A stretch of DNA of 64,000 bases from Macrostomum lignano (taxonomy: Eukaryota), in assembly GCA_002269645.1 (NCBI GenBank), contig NIVC01000067.1:868001-932000 (forward strand), in the 5' to 3' direction. Below, in pieces: positions 4,924 through 63,999 of this stretch. The first letter of the stretch is position 1, and the number at the start of each line of letters is the position of its first letter. The translations under genes and the position numbers were made by a program. A model generated the notes under the pieces. It searched no databases. It worked only from the letters and a program-made list of their open reading frames with translations, and was not told the DNA's origin.

Positions 4924-5814
4924 TCAGCTGTCTGCGGCCGGCACAATTCGAACTCGCTGCGACACGCCGAACCGCGTGTGAAATGTGCCGGCCGTCACGA
5001 AGGCGACCTTGCTGCTGCCCTCCGGGTGCCGGAAGCCGAGGTTTCGCTGGAACACCTGGCGCAGATTCGGGATCACGATTGGCAGCAGGTAGCGATTGTC
5101 CTTGGTGTACAGGCGCACCTTGATGCGGCCGGATAGGTAGGTGACGGCCGTGAACCGGGCCTTGAACTCGTCCTCCTCAATCACCACCTCCGCTTCCACC
5201 CGGGAGGGCCGGCCGTCCCGGCTGCCGGGCACCCGGATCTCCGTGTTGATGGCCCACGTCACCTCGGACTCCACCGACTTCTCCGACTCCTTCTCCAAGC
5301 TGAACTCGGCGCTGAAGCCTGCGTTGAGTTCCAGGATGTCCTGCGGCAGCGCGAGCTTCAGGCCGAACTCCTGGTTGAGCACCAGGCCGCGGGTGATGCG
5401 GTAGCAGCAGCTCGAGCGGGTGGTCCTGCTGGTGTTGATGTGGTTGACGATCTCGTGCGGGCACTCGTTGGTGTACACCGTGCGGAATGCACAGCAGCTG
5501 CTGGTGCTGGGCCTCAGCGCCCGGCCCTGAGCCACCACCGTGACGGCCTCGGAGGCAAGCAGCTTGTCATCGTCGCCCTCGCCGTCGCCGCCAGCGCGGT
5601 TGGCCGCCTCAGGCTCGTAGTTGGGCACGGCGGTGACCACCTGCAGCTCGCGGGTGTCGATCTCTCGGCGCAGTTCGCCCCAGGGCAGCCGGCAGCCGAG
5701 CGACTTCTCCAAGTCCTTGCGTTCGTTCCTGTCGTAGATGGCTTCGGCAAACCTGTCAACGATGTCGTCAAGGTTGACGATCTGCTCCTTGAGTGCCGCC
5801 GGCTCGTCCGCCAT
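4924..5814 (-). CDS. Aerolysin-like / ETX-MTX2 family beta-pore-forming protein (LIN-24-like), 296 aa, coding region intronless
   Basis: Clean GC-rich ORF from MADEPAALK. It has FRTVYTN, a Ser/Thr-rich TSRTTRSSC strand, an amphipathic hairpin (ITRGLVLNQEFGLKL..LNAGFSAEFSL), then EVTWAINTEIRVP and AEVVIEEDEFKARF, the motif order of metazoan ETX/MTX2 proteins. Recognised by eye, no HMM run. A splice acceptor ends at 5840. Confidence 0.8.
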   Translation of the reverse strand: MADEPAALKEQIVNLDDIVDRFAEAIYDRNERKDLEKSLGCRLPWGELRREIDTRELQVVTAVPNYEPEAANRAGGDGEGDDDKLLASEAVTVVAQGRALRPSTSSCCAFRTVYTNECPHEIVNHINTSRTTRSSCCYRITRGLVLNQEFGLKLALPQDILELNAGFSAEFSLEKESEKSVESEVTWAINTEIRVPGSRDGRPSRVEAEVVIEEDEFKARFTAVTYLSGRIKVRLYTKDNRYLLPIVIPNLRQVFQRNLGFRHPEGSSKVAFVTAGTFHTRFGVSQRVRIVPAADS

Positions 5815-7079
5815 GACCGCCCGAGTTCCAGCCGTGTTGCTGGGGTGGAGGCAACGGGAAAGAAGAATGAAATTAGGGGATCGGAGATCCACCCTGCCAG
5901 TCTGTATTTAATGCCGAACCGATCGATCGGACTCCTGCCCTCCCAGCCCCAGCAGGCATTTCATAGGGAAGCCCAGAATGACTCTTGTTTTCCTCTCTCT
6001 CATTTCCTTGCCGCCCCAAGGCTTGGCAACAACCGGGGGCGCATTTTTTCGGAGAAGCCTCTCCAGTCTGCTGCTCACCTTCAGATTAATAATCCCGCCT
6101 TCACCCTGAGCAGTCAATCTGATTTTTTCGATCGGCCACGAGATAGAGAGAGAGAGAGAGAGAGAGCGATAAGCATGCAGTGTGTAGGAGAATTCCCCAA
6201 TACAAGCTGCGAGCCTGACTGAGCTATATTTGCCGCACAATAATGCACCGTGTGGAACTCTGTGTGGAAGAGCTGACTGTATTAACAATTCGAAGCAGTT
6301 CTGTTCAATATACGAAGCAAAAGAATCCCAATAATTTGAATATACGTAATATTTACCAACTTTGCAAACAAAATGCACAGAGCCTAAGGATTCTGTCAAA
6401 TATAAAATAATAACAAAATTAATAATTATTCAAATCACCAAAATATGAAAGTTACCTTTTGATATTTACCTAAAAGTCACTGGATGGCAGACCTGCAGAG
6501 GATAGTATAAGTTGGCAACAGAAAGATTCGCGGAAGAGAATAAAAACTTGTGCAGTTTGATTCCAGACTGGTCAGGCCAATCTAAACGCGAAAACTATGC
6601 AGATGAAAGCGATAAAACAAAGTCTTTGTTAAGTGTTTCTGGTTTAGTATCTGCTGGCAAACTGCAAATAAATGAGTAAATCTGCTTCTGCAGATTAAAG
6701 ACAATCTATTAAAAAAGCTGCTTTTTCAACGTGTTGTCTTTCTTCTACGTGTATAGTTTCCTAGAAATGATGCGATGCTGTCCGAAAAAAATGTTAGGGC
6801 AAACTACTTGTAGTAGCTAGTGCGAACATATTTGCAAGCGAGTTTATGTAGCGGTTTCAATGCGCACTTATATCTTTCAAGTTATGACTCCTTTGACAAC
6901 CGCTGATAATAATAAAATAATAGTAACATTAATAATATTAATGATAATAGTCACAATATTACCAATCGCTCGCAGGAAGGCCGTAGGCACCCTGGAGCAA
7001 CGATTTCTTTGGCGACATCATTCTACAACCAGCGCTGACGGCAAATCTGCCAATCCTGAGCACATACAAGCACGCCAAA

Positions 7080-9617: not shown

Positions 9618-10034
9618 ATGACGTCAGCCGTTGGCGGTACTGGACTGTTCAAAGCGCCGTACCGTCTGTCCAGACGGCAGCCGCAGCTGCCTCTGGTCAG
9701 CTCCGGGGAACCTGCAGCCAAGTGGAAGGCCGCAGCTGCCGCCGCTGCCGCCGCCGCCGCCTCGGCAGCAGGAACAACCGACTCTGATTCCAACGCCGAC
9801 AACAAGGAGCCGCTGACATCCGAGGATTGTTCAACAAAGTCTTCTTCGACTTGCTCAGATGCGCTGCCAAATTCGACTGAGGCGACTACAGCGAGTAGAA
9901 AAAAGTCGGTCAACTTCCGGTTGTCGCCGGCTGAAGAAGCGGCTGACAGGGAGGCACAGCTGCTGGCCTCGCTGGGCATCGAGTTCCGGCCTGGGCGAGT
10001 CCGGCCGAATCCCCATGGCAACCGGATGCGATAA
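9618..10034 (+). CDS. Orphan 138-aa low-complexity protein or terminal exon (poly-Ala, KKSVNF motif)
   Basis: GC-rich island preceded by a pyrimidine tract with AG at 9601 and another AG at 9617 directly before the ATG. No family recognised. Confidence 0.45.
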   Translation: MTSAVGGTGLFKAPYRLSRRQPQLPLVSSGEPAAKWKAAAAAAAAAAASAAGTTDSDSNADNKEPLTSEDCSTKSSSTCSDALPNSTEATTASRKKSVNFRLSPAEEAADREAQLLASLGIEFRPGRVRPNPHGNRMR

Positions 10035-10488
10035 TCAAGCATCTGTGCTGATCACTTGGCTGTGTTTGCTGGCCTGCTCTTGACAGTTCTGTCATCGCGT
10101 GCCCAAATGTTGATGAGGATTTCTCACTTTGAGGATGCCAGCTGTCTTCAACTCTGCTGTCTACTTATGTAATTCCCCACTCATCATTTCCCACATCAGT
10201 CCCAATTATCAAATTGATCATCAAACACCGATTCCGTTATTCAAGTCTTGCCTGCTCGCTGTTTAATTGAAAACCTGAATTTACGCTCGTATCTCACCCT
10301 GTGACCGCCCGATGCATCCAGTCACTCTAGCAAATCTTGTCAATCAAGCGCAATAAATTTTGATTGTGTTTTTTCAAATTAAAATAAATCTGTTGAAATG
10401 CACAGCCTACTCTCGATTTAATGTTTCGGTCTGTAATCCTTCATTTAACTTATTTTAGTGACAAAGAAACAACTTGTCTGCCTGTCTA

Positions 10489-10921
<433 letters not shown>

Positions 10922-11615
10922 TTAGTCAAGCCAATGACAGCTCCAATATTTTCCAGCATCGGTGAACCGTGACAGAAACAGGATGAAATTTAACAACCCC
11001 CTCTCCTAAGAAATGAAAGACTGCAAATTAAAGCAAAGCAGAGCACAGATGAAGAGGACACTCCTCGCTGCGGAAGGGAACTCAAAAATTTCTTTTCAAA
11101 CGGAGGAAGAGGATAAGGGAAAATACAGACGGATGAGACGGAAGAGGAGCAATGGGAGGAAGGGGGGAGAGAGGGGGACGGGGCACTTATTCAGGCTGGG
11201 GACCGCAATAAAAATCGCATTGCCAATTCGGCGGCCGGCAGCAGCGGAGGGGCGCATCGGTCCGGGGGGGGGGCTGCCCGCAGGGGGAGACCCGGCCGGG
11301 CTTCGGATTGAAATTGGCGGGCAATCGATGCCGCTGCGAGGCTCTGGGGCTGGGGGCGAGAGAGAGAGAGGTAGGAAGAGACGGAGCCAAGGGATTGGCG
11401 TTCCGCTTCTAGGGGACGGGGCTGAGGCATAGAAACGGGAGGAAGGAGCGGAGCCTCCGGAGCTGGGAGCAGGAGAAAAAAGCAGCAGAGAGAGCGAGAG
11501 GAAGCAGACAGCGCGGGGGTCAAGAAAATAAGAAGAAGCGGATAGAGGAGGATCTGTCTGAGCTGCCGGGCGCGACTTCTTTCTCCATTGTCCCCCTGAG
11601 CAGCCGCGACTGGTC

Positions 11616-12605
11616 ATGCACTCTGCCAGTCTGCCCGACTACGTCAATGCCGAGGCCATGCAGATGCAGCAGCACCTCCAGAAGCCCGCAGGTTCATCGA
11701 CCACCGTGTCCATCTCCACTGGCAGCAGCGAGACTGACGGGGAGTCTGGCTGCTGCTGTCTCTGCTGCTGCTGCTGCTTTTGCTGCCGCGGGACCGGACG
11801 GAGCGAACTGGACGAGCGGGCGGGCCGGTTCGCCAGCGCCCTGCTGCTCCTGGCAGCGCTGCTGCTGTCGGTGGATGCGGCCAGGCTGGCACTTTTCGGC
11901 TGGCACTCGGACGGCGCTTTCCTTCGCTTCAACTTCGCCGGCTCCGGCCCCGGCGTCGACTGGCCCCGCTGCGGCGGCGGCAGCGCCGGCACTCTGACGC
12001 CGCTGCTGGACAGGTCGGCGCGAGAGGCGCCAAGCTGGCTGTCCGAGGCGCGCCAGACTCTGGACAATAGTCTGCTGCTGGCCGGCCAGGCTGTCGAAGT
12101 CGGGCTCCGCCTGCCGCGGCCAAGGCAACCGCCGAAGCCGCTGGTCCTGGCATTGAACCACGCGGGCATCGCCGCGAGCGTGTGCCTGCTGGCGGCGGCC
12201 GTCCTGCCGGCCTGCCTTCGGCCACGGCGGCCCGCCCGCTGCTCGCTGGCAGCGGGAATCGTCCTGGCAGCCTCAGCCGTCGGCCTGTCGCTGCTGGCCA
12301 CGTCGGCGTGTCTGGTGAAGCTCTATTTCTTCACCCTGTGCGAGGTCGGCAGCTCGCAGGCCGAGCCGCCCCGCTACGACAGCCTCGTGCCGCCCTGCCC
12401 GCTGCTGCGCAAGGCGTTCTTCTGCGCCGAGTGCTTCAGCCTGCTGGTGCTGATCGCCTCCGCCTGCATGGCCGCCTGCCTGCTGGCCTTCCTGTCCAGG
12501 GCCGCCTGCGGCTGCGACAACCGGCGGCCAAGCCTGCGGCAGCTGCCCCGGCGTCGGCGGAATCGCAACGACGAGGGCGACGTTGGCGTGGGATTCAACG
12601 TCTGA
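11616..12605 (+). CDS. Intronless four-TM membrane protein (claudin/PMP22-like topology), 329 aa, with N-terminal Cys cluster
   Basis: Four hydrophobic segments with a large loop after TM1; CCCLCCCCCFCC before TM1; basic C-terminal tail. Acceptor CAG ends at 11603, 12 nt before the ATG. Family not determined. Confidence 0.75.
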   Translation: MHSASLPDYVNAEAMQMQQHLQKPAGSSTTVSISTGSSETDGESGCCCLCCCCCFCCRGTGRSELDERAGRFASALLLLAALLLSVDAARLALFGWHSDGAFLRFNFAGSGPGVDWPRCGGGSAGTLTPLLDRSAREAPSWLSEARQTLDNSLLLAGQAVEVGLRLPRPRQPPKPLVLALNHAGIAASVCLLAAAVLPACLRPRRPARCSLAAGIVLAASAVGLSLLATSACLVKLYFFTLCEVGSSQAEPPRYDSLVPPCPLLRKAFFCAECFSLLVLIASACMAACLLAFLSRAACGCDNRRPSLRQLPRRRRNRNDEGDVGVGFNV

Positions 12606-15742: not shown

Positions 15743-15794
<52 letters not shown>

Positions 15795-17173
15795 TGCATT
15801 AGGCATTTATTGGGACAAGCGTGTATAAACTGACCCGTGCTATTAGGACCAAAAATGTGTTGGGCCAGGCCCAATAAGTGCGTCCCGACACTTCCAAAAA
15901 TGAATTCTATTGAAATGAAAAAATATTCATTGGAACCGTCTTTCGATTCTCCTTTCAAAAATCAATGTCATTTTTTCATATTTTTAATCAAACACGGGGA
16001 ATCTAATGATTTGCAGTGTCCTAAGAAGTTTAAAAAATTATGCGAACTGATGGTCTGATCCAACAGAACAATTGGGTCTCAAATCGGAATTCTCGTTTTA
16101 TTACAATATTTCTTACAATATCAAGAAAGTCTACTACAAGTAACAGATAGAGGTTCTCCACAGGGCTGCCAATCGACACTTGAAAGGATCCTGACATTTG
16201 GCATCGTGTTTACTATAAAATATGAAATAATTTAATAAAGATTTAGAATATTACAATCAAGCATACAAACCTTATAGATTTAGTATATTTAGATTTTTGC
16301 ATAGAAACAGCTAGCATCTAAATTCATTAGCTTCCAATTTCACTTATACACGAAACATGGCAAATTAAGGTTACATCCGCCTGTGCCCTCGGCCATTTTA
16401 ACTGAAATTCTCGTTTTCAGTCAGCTGCATTAATCTATTTGTCATATGTGAATGGGTATTAACTGACTCAAGTTAGTGACTGGAGGCCATTAACGTAAAG
16501 TGACACTTTGAGTGAGGTAGTTTTCCGGTGGAAATTCTCACAGTCTTATGAAGCGCTTTTAGAGCAAAGAAATAAAGGGCAAAGAAAAACTTTGCATTTC
16601 CCGAGAAAACCGAGGACGAGTATTAGAGGGAAACGTTTAATCTCTAAGGCTTTAAATGACTTCCTTATTGGCCTGGGTTTGGGCAGCCATACTATGTAGC
16701 AATTTTTCCTAGAATTATGATAATTATCGTCTGGTGTACTGAAAAGTACGGAGATACGAAGAAACTTAAGATGACTGCATGGACTGCTAGCACATGTTTG
16801 AGTGTCACTGTCACTGTAAAGTCTAAATCGATGACTAGTTGGCCCAAAACTACTAGGCCTTCCTGAAAAACAATTCTGCTTATCTTGGATCGTAAAGATA
16901 AACCCACGTACAGAGCAGAAGTGTTAAGACAAGCGTGTACAAGACCCAGGCAATCCCTTACCCAGGCCACGTGTACATTCCTATCGCGGCGGGGGGAAGC
17001 GGGGAGGAGAGGCGGGCGCAAGGGAGTCAGGATAAAGTTTACACTGAAGTTGAGGCCTACAAGAGGAAGAGCCAATTCTAACGGAAAGGTACATGTAGAA
17101 GTTCCCTTTGACAAACGGCGTACTGCATATGTTCAAACGAATATAATTCATTTGCGAGACCTGCACTACACAG

Positions 17174-17679
17174 ACAAAATGTGCCACGTCACAAGAGTTT
17201 CCATGCATGACCTGGCATGAAAAGACTTGGCTAGGAACCATTACACATATGTAAGTAGAATTTAAAATTCTTTTTAAAATTTTATGATTAAATAAAAACT
17301 TAACCGGAATTTACATATGTACTTTTCTAAAATTCCAGATACGTTGATATCGATAAGCTACCGTTTTCTTCTATAACAAACATATTTGCCTTCATTGTCA
17401 AGTAAGTCTTGTCTCGTACTCGTATATGTCGTATTTTTTGTAGGTTGAAAAAAATAATAAGCAGCCTAGTAATACTCTGAGCTCAGTGAAATATAAGAGA
17501 GGCGGGACGATCACCTTATTTATCAATTAATTTACAACAGCCAGTTGAGCAATCATAAGTAGGCAAAATTTACACTTCTAGGAAGAACAAATTTTACTAA
17601 AAGTTTCAATCAAAACATTTGGGAAAGAAATCTCGCACGACACATCGCCCACAGTACTAGAGACTTGGAGAAATACTAT
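17174..17679 (+). CDS. Candidate chain of three short exons (17174-17250, 17339-17401, 17655-17679)
   Basis: Each has a CAG acceptor and a GTAAGT/GTAAGT/GTGAGT donor. Phases 0-2, 2-2, 2-0 join without a stop: TKCATSQEFPCMTWHEKTWLGTITHIYVDIDKLPFSSITNIFAFIVNTRDLEKYY. Confidence 0.4.
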
Positions 17680-18238
17680 GTGAGTTTTCTGGGCAACTAA
17701 TGTAATATATTACTGTTATAATTCGATAGTCGAATTATTTTTTTACCCAAAGCAGTGCTATTGCATAACTAAAGAACAGTATAAAAATGACAGCATTCTA
17801 GAACGAGAAACAAAGCTTACTGCAAAGGCAAACGCCGAAAGAAAAGCAGGGCAGAGTCAGCAGCAAAAAAGAAGCTCATCTGAATGGAAAGATGGGCGGT
17901 CAGCAAAGAGATAGGATCTCAAAAAATTGCAACTCCTAGTAACTGAAACTCAATTGCAATAAGTGTTTTGTTCTCTAGGGCATTATTAAAACAAGCAAGC
18001 CTGCCTGCAGTCAGCTAGTGAGAAAGTAAGTTGTTGCGGCACTATCGGGAAAGTGAAAATTGTACTCCATCTGACTCACACAAGCAGCAGCGTTGGGACA
18101 AACCTCGAGTATTTTAATTGTACAGTAAAATTTCATTGACAATGAAGCATTTATTAGAACAGCGACATTTAAATCTGTTTTCAAACAAATCAGACCGATT
18201 TCTCATGAGTTATTTTTCTTTTGTGCGCCCACGCACAG

Positions 18239-18300
18239 GTTCATCCGCATTCAAACTCGCCGCTGCATCCGTCATTTGGTTCACTTGCTGCTCACAAGCC

Positions 18301-18339
<39 letters not shown>

Positions 18340-18948
18340 GCTATCCGTGCAGGCAGTCAGTCTATTTGTGAATTTTCTGGTGGATCTGAAGAAAACCCGT
18401 CTGGCACAGGATTAAAGAGAAAGAGACTATCTGTTTTGGGTGAGTATTATCTGCTGTAGAAGTATTGTACACCAGAGTACTTGTGTTACCTGATAGAGCA
18501 CAATTCAAAAGCAATGCAACAATCTCAGTGGCATTGTTGGGACACAAGCTACAAACGCAAAGAATAGTAAACACAGCCCAGCCTAGCTCAAGGCTAGTAA
18601 TTTGTTGGGCATTTATTGGGACATTGCAGCCAGGCCTATTTTTTGAACAGCATTTGTTGGGTCGCACTTATTGGGACAATACTGATTCTAATCGCGACTA
18701 CTTCTGAGTTCTGACTTTTCAAAACAGACCCAGCATTAGTTGAACACGTTCTATTAAAGGGTTCCTTTATAGCCTATTAATGATTACTAAAGCAAGCCTA
18801 TCTTAATTGATTTCTTTTCCTCGCAGCTTCTGAAGTCAGCAACGCCAGCGACATGCCTAAGAGACAAGAATGCGCTTTAACGATCAGCAGCGAGCATTCT
18901 GATCTCGCCGCTGCATCCGTCATTTAGTTCACTTGCTGCTCACAAGCC

Positions 18949-18981
<33 letters not shown>

Positions 18982-19590
18982 GCTATCCGTGCAGGCAGTC
19001 AGTCTATTTGTGAATTTTCTGGTGGATCTGAAGAAAACCCGTCTGGCACAGGATTAAAGAGAAAGAGACGATCTGTTTTGGGTGAGTATTATCTGCTGTA
19101 GAAGTATTGTACACCAGAGTACTTGTGTTACCTGATAGAGCACAATTCAAAAGCAATGCAACAATCTCAGTGGCATTGTTGGGACACAAGCTACAAACGC
19201 AAAGAATAGTAAACACAGCCCAGCCTAGCTCAAGGCTAGTAATTTGTTGGGCATTTATTGGGACATTGCAGCCAGGCCTATTTTTTGAACAGCATTTGTT
19301 GGGTCGCACTTATTGGGACAATACTGATTCTAATCGCGACTACTTCTGAGTTCTGACTTTTCAAAACAGACCCAGCATTAGTTGAACACGTTCTATTAAA
19401 GGGTTCCTTTATAGCCTATTAATGATTACTAAAGCAAGCCTATCTTAATTGATTTCTTTTCCTCGCAGCTTCTGAAGTCAGCAACGCCAGCGACATGCCT
19501 AAGAGACAAGAATGCGCTTTAACGATCAGCAGCGAGCATTCTGATCTCGCCGTTGCATCCGTCATTTGGTTCACTTGCTGCTCACAAGCC

Positions 19591-19623
<33 letters not shown>

Positions 19624-20871
19624 GCTATCCGTGCAGGCAGTCAGTCTATTTGTGAATTTTCTGGTGGATCTGAAGAAAACCCGTCTGGCACAGGATTAAA
19701 GAGAAAGAGACGATCTGTTTTGGGTGAGTATTATCTGCTGTAGAAGTATTGTACACCAGAGTACTTGTGTTACCTGATAGAGCACATTTCAAAAGCAATG
19801 CAACAATCTCAGTGGCATTGTTGGGACACAAGCTACAAACGCAATGAATAGTAAACACAGCCCAGCCTAGCTCAAGGGTAGTAATTTGTTGGGCATTTAT
19901 TGGGACATTGCAGCCAGGCCTATTTTTTGAACAGCATTTGTTGGGTCGCACTTATTGGGACAATACTGATTCTAATCGCGACTACTTCTGAGTTCTGACT
20001 TTTCAAAACAGACCCAGCATTAGTTGAACACGTTCTATTAAAGGGTTCCTTTATAGCCTATTAATGATTACTAAAGCAAGCCTATCTTAATTGATTTCTT
20101 TTCCTCGCAGATTCTGAAGTCAGCAACGCCAGCGACATGCCTAAGAGACAAGAATGCGCTTTAACGATCAGCAGCGAGCATTCTGATCTCGCCGCTGCAT
20201 CCGTCATTTAGTTCACTTGCTGCTCACAAGCCGCAGCAGCAGCAGCAGCAGCAGCAGCAGCCGCTATCCGTGCAGGCAGTCAGTCTATTTGTGAATTTTC
20301 TGGTGGATCTGAAGAAAACCCGTCTGGCACAGGATTAAAGAGAAAGAGACGATCTGTTTTGGGTGAGTATTATCTGCTGTAGAAGTATTGTACACCAGAG
20401 TACTTGTGTTACCTGATAGAGCACAATTCAAAAGCAATGCAACAATCTCAGTGGCATTGTTGGGACACAAGCTACAAACGCAAAGAATAGTAAACACAGC
20501 CCAGCCTAGCTCAAGGCTAGTAATTTGTTGGGCATTTATTGGGACATTGCAGCCAGGCCTATTTTTTGAACAGCATTTGTTGGGTCGCACTTATTGGGAC
20601 AATACTGATTCTAATCGCGACTACTTCTGAGTTCTGACTTTTCAAAACAGACCCAGCATTAGTTGAACACGTTCTATTAAAGGGTTCCTTTATAGCCTAT
20701 TAATGATTACTAAAGCAAGCCTATCTTAATTGATTTCTTTTCCTCGCAGATTCTAAAGTCAGCCACGCCAGCGACATGCCTAAGAGACAAGAATGCGCTT
20801 TAACGATCAGCAGCGAGCATTCTGATCTCGCCGCTGCATCCGTCATTTGGTTCACTTGCTGCTCACAAGCC

Positions 20872-20910
<39 letters not shown>

Positions 20911-21561
20911 GCTATCCGTGCAGGCAGTCAGTCTATTTGTGAATTTTCTGGTGGATCTGAAGAAAACCCGTCTGGCACAGGATTAAAGAGAAAGAGACTA
21001 TCTGTTTTGGGTGAGTATTATCTGCTGTAGAAGTATTGTACACCAGAGTACTTGTGTTACTTGGTAGAGCACAATTCAAAAGCAATGCAACAATCTCAGT
21101 GGCATTGTTGGGACACAAGCTACAAACGCAATGAATAGTAAACACAGCCCAGCCTAGCTCAAGGGTAGTAATTTGTTGGGCATTTATTGGGACATTGCAG
21201 CCAGGCCTATTTTTTGAACAGCATTTGTTGGGTCGCACTTATTGGGACAATACTGATTCTAATCGCGACTACTTCTGAGTTCTGACTTTTCAAAACAGAC
21301 CCAGCATTAGTTGAACACGTTCTATTAAAGGGTTCCTTTATAGCCTATTAATGATTACTAAAGCAAGCCTATCTTAATTGATTTCTTTTCCTCGCAGATT
21401 CTGAAGTCAGCAACGCCAGCGACATGCCTAAGAGACAAGAATGCGCTTTAACGATCAGCAGCGAGCATTCTGATCTCGCCGCTGCATCCGTCATTTGGTT
21501 CACTTGCTGCTGCCAAGCTGCAGCAGCAGCAGCAGCCGCTATCTGTGCAGCAGTCAGTTAA
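18239..21561 (+). CDS. Array of phase 1-1 poly-Ala exons: 18239-18439, 18827-19081, 19469-19723, 20111-20362, 20750-21010, and terminal 21398-21561
   Basis: Every copy has a CAG acceptor (TTTCTTTTCCTCGCAG in copies 2-6); copies 1-5 end in G|GTGAGT. All five lengths are multiples of 3. Copies 2 and 4 carry TGG>TAG; the last copy ends at TAA 21559-61. Confidence 0.55.
18256..21540. repeat. ~642-bp tandem repeat, about 5.2 copies, each with a variable (GCA)n tract
   Basis: Acceptor spacings are 642, 642, 639 and 648 nt; the units are nearly identical. Confidence 0.97.
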
Positions 21562-21761
21562 TTCATGAGTTTTCTGGCGGAGCTGGTTATTTTTTTAATT
21601 TTCTGAATCGAGAAGCTGATTAACTGTTGTGTGCTTCACTGGAATATTATTTAGAGGACGCATTTTTTGCAGTCTGTTTCTAATAAAATCCGGTGCAATG
21701 ACCGCGGTAGAGCTCTAGCATTTGCTTTTTATAGTATTTGTGTATATTCTTTTTCAAGCTA

Positions 21762-22166
21762 TGCTGGAATTGTTGGGACAGCCCTATCCACACTGGCTAT
21801 GGTGGAATTGTTGGGACAGCCCTATCCACACTGGCTATGGTGGAATTGTTGGGACAGCCCTATCCACACTGGCTATGATGGAATTGTTGGGACAGCCCTA
21901 TCCACACTGGCTATGATGGAATTGTTGGGACAGCCCTATCCACACTGGCTATGGTGGAATTGTTGGGACAGCCCTATCCACACTGGCTATGGTGGAATTG
22001 TTGGGACAGCCCTATCCACACTGGCTATGGTGGAATTGTTGGGACAGCCCTATCCACACTGGCTATGGTGGAATTGTTGGGACAGCTCTATCCACACTGG
22101 CTATGGTGGAATTGTTGGGACAGCCCTATCCACACTGGCTATGGTGGAATTGTTGGGACAGCCCCA
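21762..22166. repeat. 38-bp minisatellite (GGAATTGTTGGGACAGCCCTATCCACACTGGCTATGGT)n
   Basis: About 10.5 head-to-tail copies with no spacers. Confidence 0.95.
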
Positions 22167-22845
22167 TACTATAGTGTGTGCTGGCTTCTGCTATAGTGTG
22201 GTTCATTTCCGCATCCTTTTACGTAGCATTCTGTGGGTCCGAATAGCTGACATGTACCTTTTGAGTAATTCTAGTGATTGTGTCATAATCAATAAAGTAC
22301 ATTTTTATGAACAGTGGAGTTTCGCTACAGAATTGTTTTTTCCCAGTGGCACTAAATGTAGCAAATTTTGTTTATTCAGATCGTAAAATTTTTTTGATAT
22401 GTGTCAATGTCGTTTGTCTTCGATAACCTTAAAGTCCCTTGCCATTTACCATCCTGTCTTCTATAATCTATGATCGCTGAAATTATCTGGTGAAATTTGA
22501 CGCGCTGATATTATTGCCTTAGTGGAATTCAGCAAGACACCAGGGTTTTTTAATTCTGTTTTAGACAAGTATACATGTACAATCTGTTGTGAGTTCAATG
22601 CACCTCGAAAAATGCTTTCCAACTGTTTTCAGTAAGCCAAAAGCATGTTGTCAATAAAAATCTATTTGGTGGGTTGAAAATTGCCTGTGTGGGGACGTGT
22701 GTGTGTGTGATTTTTCGTGTGTCGGAGCAGTCCCAATATGTGCAAGTTTTTGCACACTTGGCCAATAAGTGCCTCGTGCACGTTTGTGTGTGTGTGTGTG
22801 TGTGTGTAGGATTTGTGAAGCGTGAGACTGATTTGAGGATGTAAG

Positions 22846-32577: not shown

Positions 32578-34551
32578 CTATGCCTTCTCAGACCCGTCCG
32601 ACTGGCGCTGCGACAGCACCGCACCAAGCCCAATTCGAGAGCTGGCATCCGTGTCAAGAATAAACTCACCAGCGTTTGGCGAGAAGTCTGGAAAAGCCAT
32701 AACGCTTGGCGAACACAGAGCCGCTTTCAGACTGTTGAACGACTGCTCTTGGGCTGGGCCCCATTTGAACTCGGCATCGTTCGCTACAAGTCTGTAGAGC
32801 GGAGCGGCAATCTCGGAAAAATTTGGAATGAAAGCTTTGTAGTAAACGCACAGTCCGAGAAACGATTGGACTTTGGCCACACTGCAAGGCCTGGGCCAGT
32901 CCTGGATTTCGGCACACTTTTCTGGGTTCGTTGCTATTCCATCCTTGGAGATCACGTGACCTAAGAAGCTAATCTTTTCGGCCAGAAAGACAAATTTTGC
33001 TGGCTTCAGCTTAATGTTAGCACTTCTGAGACATTGGAACACATGCTCAAGGCGCTCGAAGTGCTGCTGCACAGTCGTGGAGAAGACAACTATGTCGTCG
33101 AAGTAGACGAGGCATTCCTTCCAGTTGACTTCTGACAGTGCCATGGACATGAGTCTCGTAAAGGTTGACGGGGCGTTTTTGAGCCCGAAACTCATGCACT
33201 TCCACGCAAACTGTCCCCGATTCGGCACCACGAAAGCGGTCTTTAACTGGTCTTTCGACTCCAGTGGGCACTGATGGTACCCGGATGCCAGGTCCATCGT
33301 GGAAAAGATGCAGTTTCCCCGAGCGCATCAAGAGTCTCATCCATCCTGGGCGGAGGCAGAGGATCAGGCACGGTCACGCTGTTCAGACGCCTGTAATCCA
33401 GACACATTCTGAGACTGCCATCCGACTTTCTAACCGGAACCACTGGGCTCGACCAGGGTGACTGACAGGGATAGATGCGGCCTTCAGCCAGCAGTTGATC
33501 AACCTGTTTATCAACCTCACTTCTCCAGTGCGGCGGGATTCTGCGCAAGGGTTCAGTCACGGGCTTTGCGCTACCCGTGTCGATTTCGTGCGCCATCAGA
33601 TTCGTGAGCCCGAGTTCAGAGCTGTCTTTGGCAAAGACGTCACGATTTTTGGCAACCAGGGAAACAAACTCTCTTGCCTCTGCGTCTGATAGGCCGCAGG
33701 CACCCCACTCTTTGACTTCGCTGAGGGGACTCCACAGCTCTCCTTCTGACTGGACGGCATTCAGCTGCAGCTCCGCTGGCTGCTGCGCAGAGACCGGCGA
33801 AAACCAGCCAACTCGAGTGCCCCGCCTTATCGACAAACTGCACTCCGACGTGTTCAGAATCCTGACAGACAACTGACCCTCTTGATCAGGCAACTGCACC
33901 GATCTGGCCAGCAAATGATCACCTGCTGCCCGACGCTCGGACTCCACCATTCCAGGAAACTGAAATCCCCTCACCCCGCGTCTCTGAAGGCGGACTGGGA
34001 CCAGCTTCTCCTCACCGACATCCATCCGGACAGCCTGGCGCAGCACGATGCGGCACACAAGGGGTCTGTCAGCACAAAAACGGAAAGGAAAGACACACGA
34101 TTCTGTCTGCAGGCAGTGTCTAGCGAAATCAATTATCATGCAATGTCTAATGAAAATAATCGGTTCCTAAAATGCATGGCTGTGAAATTTCATCGACAAC
34201 TAAGAATTCGTGCTCAAATTTTGTCTCACCAATCGAAAAATTCGGATTAATTCGGCCTAAAATTTGAATTGGCTCACCACTCGCTGTGTAAATTGAAAAA
34301 TCAGTACTACAATTCTGAATTTTGTTCTTAATTTTGGCGGATTCTAAGAAACGACTACTAAGTAATGACACTGTGGACCCGCTGTCCAGCAAACAAGCAA
34401 CCAAGGGCCCATATTCAAACTTTGCGTCAATATAACCCAGTCCAGTTCCACCAAGCACACTCTGGATCTGGGTTGTGGGCCCTGGCGCTTCTTCAATCAC
34501 TGCAGACGGGGCCCGGGACGCTGGCCTGGCCGGCCCCCCATCCCGTTTCCC
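32578..34551 (-). pseudogene. pol: Gypsy pol (protease LLDSGS, RT YFDD, RNase H DTDAS) with two frameshifts, truncated
   Basis: Segments 34147-34620, 33243-34139 and 32578-33297 join through frameshifts near 34150 and 33310. The frame ends at DGSEKA*. Confidence 0.93.
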
Positions 34552-35444
34552 TGACTCTGAGCAGCCTGCTGACTCTGGCACCTGGCACGAGTGTGGCCCT
34601 GCTGGCCGCAGGCAAGGCAAACTACTCGATTCTTACAGTCCGCCGCCGAGTGCCCCATCTGAAGACACCTCCCACAGGTTCTGCCCGCCTGAGGCGCGGC
34701 TGCCGGCTGCTGCGGACTCGGCTGCACCACCGAGGCCGACGCCCCTCCTTGCTTCAGCTGCGCGATCTCTGCCTTCAAGCTGGCGATCTCCGCAGCCATG
34801 CGAGCTGTCTGACTGTCCGCTGCAGCAGCTGCCGCCTGACTGTTCACCACGTGGACTGACCGCTTTCCCTCCAGCAGCTTCATCGATGCGAGAGTCTGGC
34901 GCACTCGCTGGATCGCGGCCTGCAGCGTGTCAGGGTCTTGCAGCAAGACATTCTCAAGCACCCTGTCCGGAACTCGAATCCCCTTTAAGAATCGGTCTTT
35001 TGCTAGCTCATCCCTTTGCTCCACTGGCAGAGCCGGATATGCCTTACGCATGAGCTCCCTGAGAGCGTCAGCGTAATCCTCTAGTGCTTCCCCCTCTCTC
35101 TGACTCCTGTTTTGAAATTCTGTCTTGTAGTCCTGGGGTGTGCGATTCTGACTGAAGCGAGCCTCCAGCTGCTCCACAAACTCTGCGTAGTCCAAGTCAT
35201 CATCCAGCTAGAGATTGGCCACTGCTTTAAAAGCTGTGCCAAAGTCCAACAGACTCAGCAAATTCTGCTTCCGCTGATCCTCAGGGATCTGAGCAGCCTC
35301 GCAGTACGTGGTAAACTGTTGCAACCACAAAGCAAAATCTTGAGTCGGCACATACTTATTAGGACGTGGAACGCGCTGACCCACGTTCAACTGCTCCTGG
35401 ATTCTCGCTGTCAAAGCACCGATAAGATCGTCTAAATTGGCCAT
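34497..35444 (-). pseudogene. gag: Gypsy gag with two CCHC zinc knuckles and an in-frame TAG at 35208-35210
   Basis: CGRCLQMGHSAADC and CLACGQQGHTRARC. ORFs 35208-35456 and 34497-35195 are in the same frame. Confidence 0.9.
34545..34551 (-). other. -1 programmed ribosomal frameshift heptamer G GGA AAC (gag-pol)
   Basis: XXXYYYZ slippery site in the gag frame; pol is in the -1 frame; GC-rich structured sequence follows. Confidence 0.75.
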
Positions 35445-37223: not shown

Positions 37224-37288
37224 TCAGAAGAAGCTGGTTTCCTCTCCGGCTCCAAGCTCTGGATAGTGGCAGTAATACTGCAGCGCCC

Positions 37289-37328
<40 letters not shown>

Positions 37329-38180
37329 TTGCTCCCGCCCGTTCGGCCCCGCAGCCTCCAACGGCAGAGACTGCAGCGAGGCCCTGGCGGAGGCCTGCGA
37401 CTCTTCCAGCAGCTGGCCGTAGAAGCCGCGCCGAATCCAGATCTCCGCCTCTGGCGTCTCCCGCTGCGCCGCCGCCTCCCGGTCCGGCAGTCCGCGGGCC
37501 CGGTTCCGCCGGTGCGGCAGCGACATCGAGACGGTGCCGGCCGCCGTTTCAGCCGAGACGCTGGTGGCTGACGCAGAGGCGTCGCCTCCGGCAGCCGCCA
37601 TCGAGGAGGCGACGCAGTCTTCTTTGAATGCTTCTTGACAGTCCGCCGCTGCCGCCGCCGCTTCAGACGTCGAAGTGAAGTCGCGACTTGGCGATGTCAC
37701 CGAATGCCGCTCGGCGCCGCCTGACGTGCCGCCGCCGCCGCCGCCGCCGCTGAGCCCGCTGTCGCCGCTAGGAAGGCTGCGCAGAGGGCGATAGAAAAAC
37801 GCGGTTGGATCTGGACTGCGGCGCTGCTGCTGCTGCTGTTGATGATGATGATGATGATGGTTGTGATGCTGATGCGGGTGAGGCTGGTGGTTTTGCTGCT
37901 GCTGCTGCATGTACTGCGGATGGTACTGAAGCTGCTGCTGATTGTGCGGCGGCGGCTTCGGCGCGTACTCTCGCGTAGTTGGCGGCGTCAAGAAATCCGG
38001 CGGCGACACGGGCGGAGGCGGTGGCGGCGGCAGCGGCGACACCGATGTCATCATCAGCAGGGGCGGTGGCGGCGGCGGCGGTGGCAGGGAGACGACCAGC
38101 TCTGGGGTGCAGAGGTCGTGCTCAACATCGGTTCCGACATTGCGCACGGAGTGGCACATGGGCCTGCCAGCCTGCACGCA
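37224..38180 (-). CDS. NRG: Neuregulin-like gene, terminal exon: 318-aa low-complexity cytoplasmic tail (poly-P/H/Q/G/A)
   Basis: TACTAAC branch point, then CCAACCAG acceptor, phase 0; long stop-free GC-rich frame. Confidence 0.75.
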
Positions 38181-38778
38181 CTGGTTGGCGGTGGGGAGGC
38201 GATGCAGAGTATTGTTAGTAGTATGAAGTAAGCATTCGCACTGTCCGCTCTGTGACAGCACTGTGAGCACTCTTTCTAATTAGCGGCAGGTGAGCTGATT
38301 GCACCCTGGCGCACTTTAGGCGACATTGTCACACAACCGGCGAGAGACTCTGCCAATTCCGCAGACTCCCCTGAGCAGGCACACAAGCGCGCGGATACGT
38401 ACGCAGTCATACGTACAGGCACACACTCACACAGGAGTGCACAGTGGCCCTAACTTTATCTATCGTTAGGCATGTACACTTCACTGCTCCTTGGGGAGTT
38501 GGCCTTTAAGGCTGTTAATTGCACGATCAGAGCCAAGCCGAGATTCCAGTTCAGCCCTAAATTAATGCGACTGCACTGGGAATCGAGCCTGGGCCGCTGG
38601 CACATCAAAGCGCCGCACTATACCTCCGGGCTACGCTCCCCCACTGTGAGCATTCACTTTGAAGCGAAAAATTAAGATTTTGTTAACTTTTTTTTGCATT
38701 ACTTCAAGTAGTATCAATCTGAAATAGTGTGTTCATTCTTTGTTCAACGATAATTAGTCTAAATTGCTGGGCCCTCAC

Positions 38779-42109: not shown

Positions 42110-42615
42110 AAGGGCTCGAACCTGAGACCTCTAGCTGTGACCTAAGGGAAAATTCAGGCTCAACTCAGAAATAAACTCAAGTTACACTAGGGCTCGAACT
42201 CGGGACCTCTAGTCGCGACCTGAGGGAAAATTCGGGCTCAACTCGGAAACGAACTCAAGTTACACTAGGGCTCGAACCCGGGACCTCTAGTCGCGACCTG
42301 AGGGAAAATTCGGGCTCAACTCGGAAACGAACTCAAGTTACACTAGGGCTCGAACCCGGGACCTCTAGTCGCGACCTGAGGGAAAATTCGGGCTCAACTC
42401 GGAAACGAACTCAAGTTACACTAGGGCTCGATCGAACCCGGGACCTCTAGTCGCGACCTGAGGGAAAATTCGGGTTTATAATTGAACTCGAGGTTACACT
42501 AGGATTCGAACTCGCAGCCTCAAGCCGGACCTCAGAAAAAGTTTTGATCAAAATCAAACTCAGGATCACGCTATAGGGCTCGAACCGGGGACCTCACGAA
42601 TGCAAGCAATGCTGG
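42110..42615 (-). repeat. 78-bp tandem repeat derived from a tRNA T-arm / B-box, about 6 copies
   Basis: Minus-strand unit contains TAGTGTAACTTG (A-box-like) and AGAGGTCCCGGGTTCGAGCCC (T-arm/B-box). The right-most copy extends into GCTTGCATTCGTGAGGTCCCCGGTTCGAGCCC, resembling a tRNA-Ala(TGC) 3' half. Confidence 0.75.
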
Positions 42616-62700: not shown

Positions 62701-63999
62701 TCACCTCCGGGACCGTGTCTCTTCCCGCGTTGTACCGCAGGTTTTGCGGTGTCTCGCTAGGTTTGATTTCGATATTTCTCGAGCACAGTTCGCGCATTTT
62801 ACGCGGTTTCCTCCCACTTCTCTCTCTCCTCCGCAGACCTTTACGTGGTTTAACCACGTTGCCTCTTGCCTGAACTGCTTCTCGCATTTTTCGCACTTGA
62901 ACGTTACTGGTTCTTCTATCTTGCGGTGCATCCTCTTTTGGTGAATGGTCAGGCCTGCTTTGCTTTTGCACTCCTTTCCGCAGTCTGCGTATTCACATAT
63001 GAATGTTCTTGTTTTCTCCTGTTTCTGTTTGTCGTTCCTTTCGATGTTCCTTGCTTCTGCCTTCTTTCCTTGTTGTTGTTCCCATCTCTTGAGGTGGCTT
63101 ATGCGTTCTTGAACAATTTTTCGCCATTTCTGGCGGTCGGTTGCTAGTCTCTCTGTCCTTTCGGGCTCGATCCCTGCTTGGCGTAGTAGTCGCTTCCAAT
63201 ATTCAATGGTGTTACCTTTTCTCGTACGTGTTTTCTTAATCTTTTCCAGACCTTTGTACCATCCGAGAACCATCTTTTTCGTTAGGCGGTTCGCCTCCAT
63301 GCGAAGCACATGTCCGATGCGGATCAGGTGGCTCTTCTCAATCTTTGTTTGTATTGTCGTTACTTCTAGTTCATTGCGAATGTCCTGCATATTTATTCCT
63401 TTTGCCTCCATTTCCCTTAGTGGTTCCATTTTCCTGCTGCTCCATATCTGCCGGTAGATCCGGTCCATGAAGCTTTGTAGTTGTTTCGTTTCTGACTTCA
63501 GGAATGGGCGTATGTTCGCGTGGAATAGCAGGATGCTCTCTATACAGGCTTCAACGACCTTCGCTTGCGTGGTCTTTTTCAACCTGCACTTGATGAAACG
63601 TCTACGGATCGTCGACCAGCTTCTCGCCGCTTTTTGCAATCTCTGGCTCGTGTCATATTTCGTGTCCGTCCATGATCCTAGCATTCGTACTTTTCCTCCC
63701 TCTCTGGTTCCGAATATCATTACCTCTTGCTTTTTGTCGTTCGTTTGTTCTTCGAATCCTGCCATTATTTCTTTCGTCGACTCTAGGCCCGCGCTGAGTT
63801 CCTTGCGGTTGCCTAGGATAGTGGTGTCGTCTGCGAATAGAACTGTTCTGATGAGTTCGGTTTTGGTCTCCGAGTTTGGTTGGTTTCTTCGCTGAGGTGG
63901 GAGTGAGCTTCCTGGGAGGTATGTCCATTCGATTCCGCATATTTGCTCTTTCTCCTTCGCTGTTTGTGTTCTTTTCTCCTCGACTTCCCTGATGCATGC
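62701..63999 (-). mobile_element. RTE-clade non-LTR retrotransposon ORF, 3' part (RT FADD, RIGHVLRM, three C-terminal zinc fingers)
   Basis: Stop-free from the window edge: ..TVLFADDTTILG.. to C2H2 CEYADC..HQKRMH and two C2HC fingers. Confidence 0.93.

Follow-up and report, generated by a model that had tools for sequence, protein, structure and literature searches.

A tandem array of exon-bearing units occupies positions 18256 to ~21600 of a 64,000-nucleotide stretch of the Macrostomum lignano genome (positions 868,001–932,000 of contig NIVC01000067.1, assembly GCA_002269645.1; this whole stretch is referred to here as the window and is numbered from its first letter). The array consists of five full units of 639–648 bp and a diverged partial sixth, and it lies within a ~7-kb block of sequence that recurs, with other numbers of units, in contigs NIVC01000487 (L001), NIVC01001277 (L002) and NIVC01003014 (L003). 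Splice junctions predicted from the units are found in deposited gene models, and the reading frame of the exons is broken in many copies. These features probably reflect a young, copy-number-variable, spliced tandem duplication in a dispersed repeat block, with open reading frames (ORFs) that are incidental or decaying. The array joins an already known kind, that of exon-containing tandem duplications and repeat-derived spliced transcripts. No published account of this repeat was found under its two GenBank locus names or in the M. lignano satellite and transposable element (TE) literature.

Units and exons of the array

The full units start at 18256, 18904, 19546, 20188 and 20827, and the partial sixth begins at 21475. 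A start-to-start spacing of 642, 642, 639 and 648 bp agrees with the ~642-bp tandem repeat described in a first-pass annotation of the window, which was made from the sequence alone. The differences in unit length are caused by a (CAG)11–14 tract. Tandem Repeats Finder (TRF) did not report the ~640-bp array because its longest period was 500. The likeness of the sixth copy to the unit fades after ~127 nt, with homology ending near 21586–21600. No degenerate extra units were found upstream of 18246–18256 (best score 25, versus 20.8 ± 2.1 and a maximum of 30 for shuffled sequence); since nothing upstream aligns above the shuffled controls, the left edge of the array is sharp.

Each unit is composed of an exon of 252–261 nt and an intron, which measures 387 nt in most units. 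The internal exons are bounded by the acceptor ttttcctcgcag^ and the donor TTGG^GTGAGT (^ marks the exon boundary), and the modules that they encode each finish in KRKR(R/L)SVL. The array and its exons are as follows.

18239–18439, plus strand: first array exon, 201 nt; acceptor cacag^GTTCATCC at 18238/18239; no ATG
18256–21474, plus strand: five full tandem units of 648, 642, 642, 639 and 648 bp; mutual identity 98–99%
18827–19081, plus strand: internal cassette exon, copy 2; 255 nt, phase 1-1; in-frame TAG at 18925–18927
19469–19723, plus strand: internal cassette exon, copy 3; 255 nt; poly-Ala frame open
20111–20362, plus strand: internal cassette exon, copy 4; 252 nt; in-frame TAG at 20209–20211
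20750–21010, plus strand: internal cassette exon, copy 5; 261 nt; open; C-terminal end KRKRLSVL
21398–21700, plus strand: terminal exon; the normal 5' part of a unit, then the sixth copy of the shared segment described below, which is partial and diverged

All four internal exons of the window are multiples of three in length and have phase 1-1 in the frame that encodes poly-Ala. Much of the architecture proposed in the first-pass annotation is therefore recovered: an acceptor and a donor in every unit with phase 1-1, a 5' part and acceptor peculiar to copy 1, and modules ending in KRKR(R/L)SV. Its view that the repeat is an exon-plus-intron cassette rather than a plain satellite is borne out by this unit structure and by the junctions in deposited models considered below. 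The 3' end with a stop that it ascribed to copy 6 holds in the window, where the poly-Ala frame of the terminal exon reaches a TAA at 21559–21561, followed by an AATAAA at 21682–21687, but the stop is not conserved in L001. In this sister locus, 1-nt indels relative to the window change the C-terminus and the stop of the terminal exon, which ends in IRAGSQLIDEFSGRAGYFLSF before its stop codon, and the context of the AATAAA 3' of the array is kept.

The array opens and closes in one ~130-nt segment, which extends from CTCGCCGCTGCATCC across the (CAG)n tract as far as TTTTCTGGYGGAKCTG and the terminal copy of which is more diverged, above all 3' of the CAG tract. An origin of the array by unequal exchange between two pre-existing similar segments, sharing these ~130 nt, is plausible; the pattern at the edges could equally well represent an edge copy that escaped thorough homogenisation in an older array. 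The origin by unequal crossover given in the first-pass annotation is thus consistent with the occurrence of the shared segment at both ends of the array, but a decayed edge copy accounts for it just as well. Among the window units the variants link u2 to u4 and u3 to u5, which suggests that the latest step was the joint duplication of two units, (u2,u3) to (u4,u5). In L002 the variants run in block-wise gradients along the array. The pairing in the window and the gradients in L002 are both typical of in-register unequal exchange.

The formation of the array can be envisaged as the head-to-tail copying of a ~640-bp segment made up of an intron together with the 3' part of the exon before it and the 5' part of the exon after it. 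Each junction would thereby re-create a complete exon with its acceptor and donor, and in-register unequal exchange would subsequently alter the number of units and homogenise them.

A minus-strand frame free of stops over 101 codons is also present in every unit (e.g. 18365–18667), where it crosses the 'intron' and the 3' end of the exon. It was rejected as a coding frame, as it contains no Met.

Splice-site use, transcript start and reading frame

The use of splice sites was judged from deposited gene models derived from RNA-seq; the Mlig_3_7 GenBank annotation itself draws on genome-guided RNA-seq assemblies (PMC5730564). With the conceptual spliced product as query, 25 protein matches were obtained, all from M. 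lignano. The coding sequence (CDS) of one of the deposited models, P0009 (BOX15_Mlig003618g1), is rebuilt residue for residue from L002 with the predicted donor and acceptor, through the joining of 10001–10223, 10610–10855 and 11241–11341, and ends at a TAG variant. The junction peptide RSVL[D/A]SEVS occurs 25 times in the deposited models, including UniProt models of an earlier assembly. The models also reveal three further sites in each unit, the donors GGCA^GTCAGT and ACCC^GTCTGG and the acceptor cagcag^CG, which in copy 3 of the window correspond to exon ends at 19639 and 19682, respectively, and to an exon start at 19533. All six of the donor-by-acceptor junction peptides predicted from the window DNA, with the split codon included, are present in the models (1–18 times each). 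The first-pass annotation had assigned an acceptor and a donor to each unit, and had named the absence of spliced transcripts that use them among the findings that would speak against it; since the predicted junctions are present in RNA-seq-derived models, this absence is not what is found.

The ~640-bp repeat is the source of 30 or more 'proteins' in UniProt and GenBank, and some of them bear misleading domain names, which calls for caution in the annotation of M. lignano. The UniProt names of P0007, P0017, P0020–P0025 and P0028 refer to Rho-GAP, Dymeclin, UCH, BAF250_C or DRIM, and the sequences consist of array modules only. Such names are either inherited from fused gene models beside other block copies or annotation errors.

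Two of the models, P0024 and P0025, start exactly at 18239 (VHPHSNSPLHPS...) and a third, P0022 (VRPHSNSPLHPS...), starts at the matching base in a variant copy; each of the three is in the frame that encodes poly-Gln. A 35-nt spliced leader (SL) ending in ATG is found on ~30% of M. lignano genes (PMC8629364), and the ATG of this leader, if joined at 18239, falls in the poly-Gln frame. Position 18239 may therefore be an SL trans-splice acceptor; the acceptor at 18238/18239 is a poor fit to the reported YTNCAG preference. In the 2.4 kb upstream, none of six GTRAG donors has an ATG-initiated frame in a compatible phase (0 or 1), and no signal-peptide or initiator exon was found at the window locus (exon 1 and the 2.4 kb upstream). 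As exon 1 is without an ATG, the first AUG of an exon 1–exon 2 RNA is the ATG of DMPKRQ, which in the window would open an ORF of 24 codons.

The claim that any subset of the exons can be included in frame is supported by their phase but not by their open reading frame, as copies 2 and 4 are interrupted by a TAG derived from TGG. The same change is present in two of the four internal exons of the window and in 11 of the 16 L002 units; the TAG variant is spread by homogenisation and is not purged. Among the 22 internal exons of L001 and L002, six (L001 u4 and L002 u7, u8, u11, u13 and u16) depart from a multiple of three by 1–2 nt. Shared variable sites in 28 units from three loci fall in five of 232 non-CAG columns of the exon versus 14 of 390 columns of the intron (Fisher p = 0.35), and the five exon sites comprise one synonymous, three missense and one nonsense change. 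Exon variation is thus not below intron variation, and there is no excess of synonymous change. The models read both the poly-Ala and the poly-Gln frame, swapping between them through the alternative sites, and some combinations of junctions meet stops. A HMMER scan of 1.84 billion representative proteins returned only M. lignano relatives and one spurious bacterial repeat protein, and Pfam searches with the modules and models gave only sub-threshold and mutually inconsistent repeat artefacts.

On this evidence the open frame of the consensus unit would not be kept. Nonsense and frameshift variants are common and have spread within the arrays, and non-coding or pseudogenic status is accordingly the most likely one for the array RNAs. 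Judged from the deposited models, the block is transcribed and its units are spliced, with the three donors and two acceptors per unit all in use and many isoforms resulting, and the combinatorial splicing would be a by-product of the repeated splice sites. The first-pass annotation had raised the possibility of a combinatorial, copy-number-variable protein or polyprotein; the difference in copy number between loci agrees with this suggestion, but the protein is left unsupported by the TAGs, the frameshifts, the use of two frames and the lack of an initiator exon.

The dispersed host block

The block that holds the array has the following features in the window.

15771–22792, plus strand: dispersed repeat block holding the array; recurs in L001, L002 and L003
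15808–15838, plus strand: left arm of an imperfect inverted similarity near the ends of the block, AGGCATTTATTGGGACAAGCGTGTATAAACT
22745–22774, minus strand: right arm of the inverted similarity, partner of 15808–15838
21758–22164, plus strand: 38-bp minisatellite, 10.7 copies; carries the block motif TTGTTGGGAC, which is also present three times in every 'intron'

Identity of the window copy of the block to the other copies is ~96–97% (Mlig_3_7 contigs, GCA_002269645.1). Homology of the window to L001 and L003 is confined to 15757/15771–22792, and beyond these limits no homology is shared between the flanking sequences of the window, L001 and L003; L002 was sampled inside the block only. The four paralogous copies of the block contain ~5 (window), 7 (L001), at least 16 (L002) and ~4.5 (L003) array units, a difference between loci that agrees with the copy-number variability anticipated in the first-pass annotation. 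In L003 the array is cut at 11385, inside an 'intron' and after ~4.5 units, and unrelated sequence extends from there to the end of the contig. This break may result from insertion, rearrangement or a mis-join.

The two arms of the inverted similarity match at 24 of 31 positions, with a score of 30 versus a mean of 15 (standard deviation 2.3, maximum 23) in 300 shuffles. They are imperfect and not strictly terminal, lying ~10–40 nt inside each end of the block. (GT)n microsatellites flank the block in the window (15744–15796 and 22785–22808), and shorter GT-rich sequence is found at these places in the other copies. As the block ends are embedded in GT-rich or microsatellite DNA, no clean target-site duplication is definable from the three left and two right ends. 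The 64-kb window has 28 occurrences of the 10-nt motif TTRTTGGGMC versus an expectation of 0.37, and all of these are within the block (15807–22159): at its left end, three times in the 'intron' of each unit and once in each unit of the 38-bp minisatellite. This motif may be a protein-binding or transposase-binding site. The minisatellite, which lies 3' of the terminal exon, has 4.7 copies in L001 (11651–11829). No long ORF was found in the block outside the array, and the ORF listing of its upstream part contains nothing longer than 140 amino acids (aa). The block looks like a non-autonomous element of the terminal inverted repeat (TIR) type or another kind of dispersed duplication.

The array would accordingly be carried by a block that is itself dispersed and TE-like, as judged from its imperfect inverted ends, its private TTRTTGGGMC motif and its unrelated flanks, and that may have been mobile. 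In the case of such movement, a spliced gene-like unit would have been copied around the genome within a TE-like block. If the interpretation as a young spliced duplication with incidental or decaying frames is correct, the array provides a clean and datable case of an intron-spanning tandem duplication that makes a string of splice-competent exons, and one in which an explosion of isoforms arises without any protein function.

Alternative explanations, related systems and other features of the window

Several observations weigh against the view that the reading frames are incidental or decaying. The consensus exon is a multiple of three in length and is open over ~85 codons in one frame, the chance of such an open exon being roughly 0.03 per frame (an estimate), six of the seven L001 units are open, and five or more open modules are present in each of the models P0001 and P0002. 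Some of the frameshifts in L001–L003 could be PacBio assembly errors, and since protein databases hold ORF-bearing isoforms only, the frame usage seen in the models is biased either way. A diverged paralogue family (A0A1I8HX90, P0031, and A0A1I8FV09, P0030; module ASKVSNASDMPKREDSTSTINSEHSDIADALATSCLLAAQEQQQTLLMQTGCSQSIDDLSCGAKDNSSGKGLKRKRRSVL) keeps both the module plan and an open frame, and GLKRKRRSVL^AS.VSNASDMPKR, which spans the exon junction, is near-identical between the two families. In terms of sequence pattern, KRKRR-SVL(A/D)S.VS.ASDMP-KR is a repeated segment flanked by dibasic or polybasic sites and conserved between both families, and this conservation of the module ends would fit a ~14-residue peptide set between KRKRR and KR and accompanied by a free spacer. 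The centre of the P0030/P0031 module is very different and by eye corresponds to the poly-Gln frame of the window family (SLAAHKPQQQQPLSVQAV); the P0031 centre being in the other frame, a pair of compensating frameshifts follows, and this correspondence speaks in favour of incidental or decaying frames. DNA of the P0030/P0031 family was not found in the loci compared, no encoding contig is on record and no GenBank member was found.

A genuine lineage-specific coding family would account for these observations. The array would then encode a modular secreted precursor or polyprotein, with the stop-bearing copies being decaying members of a redundant family; each cassette would give a ~14-residue peptide, SVL(A/D)S(E/K)VS(N/H)ASDMP, between KRKRR and KR together with a free spacer, and the dose of peptide would be set by copy number and exon choice. 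In addition to the open, symmetric consensus exon and the multi-module models, it is favoured by the P0031 family, in which it is precisely the stretch between the basic sites that is conserved, the centre having diverged and even changed frame, by the location of the first AUG of the exon 1–exon 2 RNA at the ATG of DMPKRQ and by the label 'Secreted protein' that two models bear in UniProt. However, the TAG and frameshift variants are homogenised through the arrays, the first-AUG ORF of the window stops after 24 codons, a signal-peptide or initiator exon was not found at the window locus and the hydrophobic stretch of the module is not conserved in the paralogue P0031; synonymous changes are not in excess, splicing freely departs from frame and the family is an orphan without a Pfam domain. 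The conservation of KRKR is explained equally well by a constraint on splicing; the end-conserved pattern also fits a constraint on splicing signals near the exon ends. The KRKR codons, AAAGAGAAAGAGA, form a purine-rich tract beside the donor, and purine-rich tracts of this kind act as exonic splicing enhancers. AAAGAGAAAGAGA is more simply read as a putative exonic splicing enhancer than as a convertase site. On balance, a coding family of this kind is considered unlikely. Its more specific form, a species-specific peptide precursor on a mobile ~7-kb block, with SVLDSEVSNASDMP (14 residues) encoded by each cassette exon pair and with movement of the block seeding new loci, is distinctly doubtful; a precursor of this type would give this regeneration model organism a new family of peptide precursors tunable by copy number.

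The array exons might instead belong to other genes, as untranslated leader or upstream exons, either as an outron, as the upstream part of an operon or through capture by neighbouring genes at each site that the block has reached. The Rho-GAP, Dymeclin, UCH, BAF250_C and DRIM names of module-only models point in this direction and fit fusions in the older ML2 gene models, and polycistronic precursor transcripts are numerous in M. lignano (PMC5730564). Nevertheless, the array is followed in the window and in L001 by a stop-bearing terminal exon with a conserved AATAAA, the GenBank models of L001 and L002 are self-contained and no such domain genes are seen beside the block in the window or L001, so that this role appears rather improbable. 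An assembly artefact, in the form of a collapsed or expanded repeat or a mis-join, deserves consideration given that M. lignano assemblies are difficult and repeat-rich (PMC5730564), but the array is present with distinct unit variants and copy numbers in the window and in three independent Mlig_3_7 contigs, its units carry ordered private variants and multi-module transcript models exist. On the strength of the four independent copies this explanation is rejected as scarcely credible.

Intragenic exon-containing variable-number tandem repeats that grow by unequal crossing-over include human LPA kringle IV-2, the NBPF Olduvai exon doublets and haptoglobin Hp2. The M. lignano array resembles these in having a head-to-tail unit with one or more whole exons and an intron, symmetric exons, variable copy number and homogenised units. 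Those repeats, however, keep their frame and encode a folded domain of a known protein, whereas in the array the frame is broken in many units, no known domain is present, the family is an orphan and the whole block is dispersed. The RRD repeats of Firre are exons of a long non-coding RNA that derive from local tandem repeats, and transcribed macrosatellites are comparable. The use of units as exons, the many isoforms, the lack of a conserved ORF and the rapid lineage-specific turnover are common to these and the array; unlike Firre-type RNAs, the M. lignano consensus unit has an open symmetric frame. Multi-copy precursors cut at dibasic sites, such as the FMRFamide-type precursors and the notothenioid AFGP polyproteins, likewise have a short conserved segment, which in the array is repeated between KRKRR and KR, and variable spacers. 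The array differs from them in that neither a signal peptide nor an amidation signal was found, each exon holds a single module, many modules carry stops and no peptide family is related to it. The resemblance of the block to non-autonomous TIR DNA transposons with internal tandem repeats lies in the occurrence of ~7 kb of sequence at different loci, the imperfect inverted ends, the repeated short motif in subterminal and internal positions and the lack of a transposase ORF; in contrast to such transposons, only four copies of the block are observed, its ends are buried in a GT microsatellite and no autonomous partner is known.

The remainder of the window has an extreme minisatellite load, with 62 TRF rows and arrays of 4- to 172-bp units every 1–2 kb; simple and tandem repeats make up 15% of the M. 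lignano genome (PMC5730564). Rfam and ARAGORN searches over the whole window gave no matches and no tRNA, respectively. Pfam searches with the long ORFs of the window identified retroelement pieces only. Fragments of a Gypsy-type long terminal repeat retrotransposon are located at 32578–35195 (minus strand) and include ORFs for gag with a zinc knuckle, reverse transcriptase and RNase H; pol is not contained in any one continuous frame. A 354-aa ORF at 62701–63765 (minus strand) has C2H2 zinc fingers at its C-terminus, and its N-terminal part presumably resembles the tail of a non-LTR retrotransposon ORF2. Three long ORFs have no Pfam match: 4924–5892 (minus strand, 322 aa), 11616–12605 (plus strand, 329 aa), which is Cys-rich and hydrophobic, and 37224–38270 (minus strand, 348 aa), which is rich in poly-Gln, poly-Pro and poly-His. 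These three ORFs may be species-specific genes or exons. A 78-bp tandem repeat of 4.6 copies at 42111–42474 has a unit containing GGGCTCGAACCCGGGACC, which is like the antisense of a tRNA T-arm, suggesting an array derived from a short interspersed nuclear element or a tRNA.

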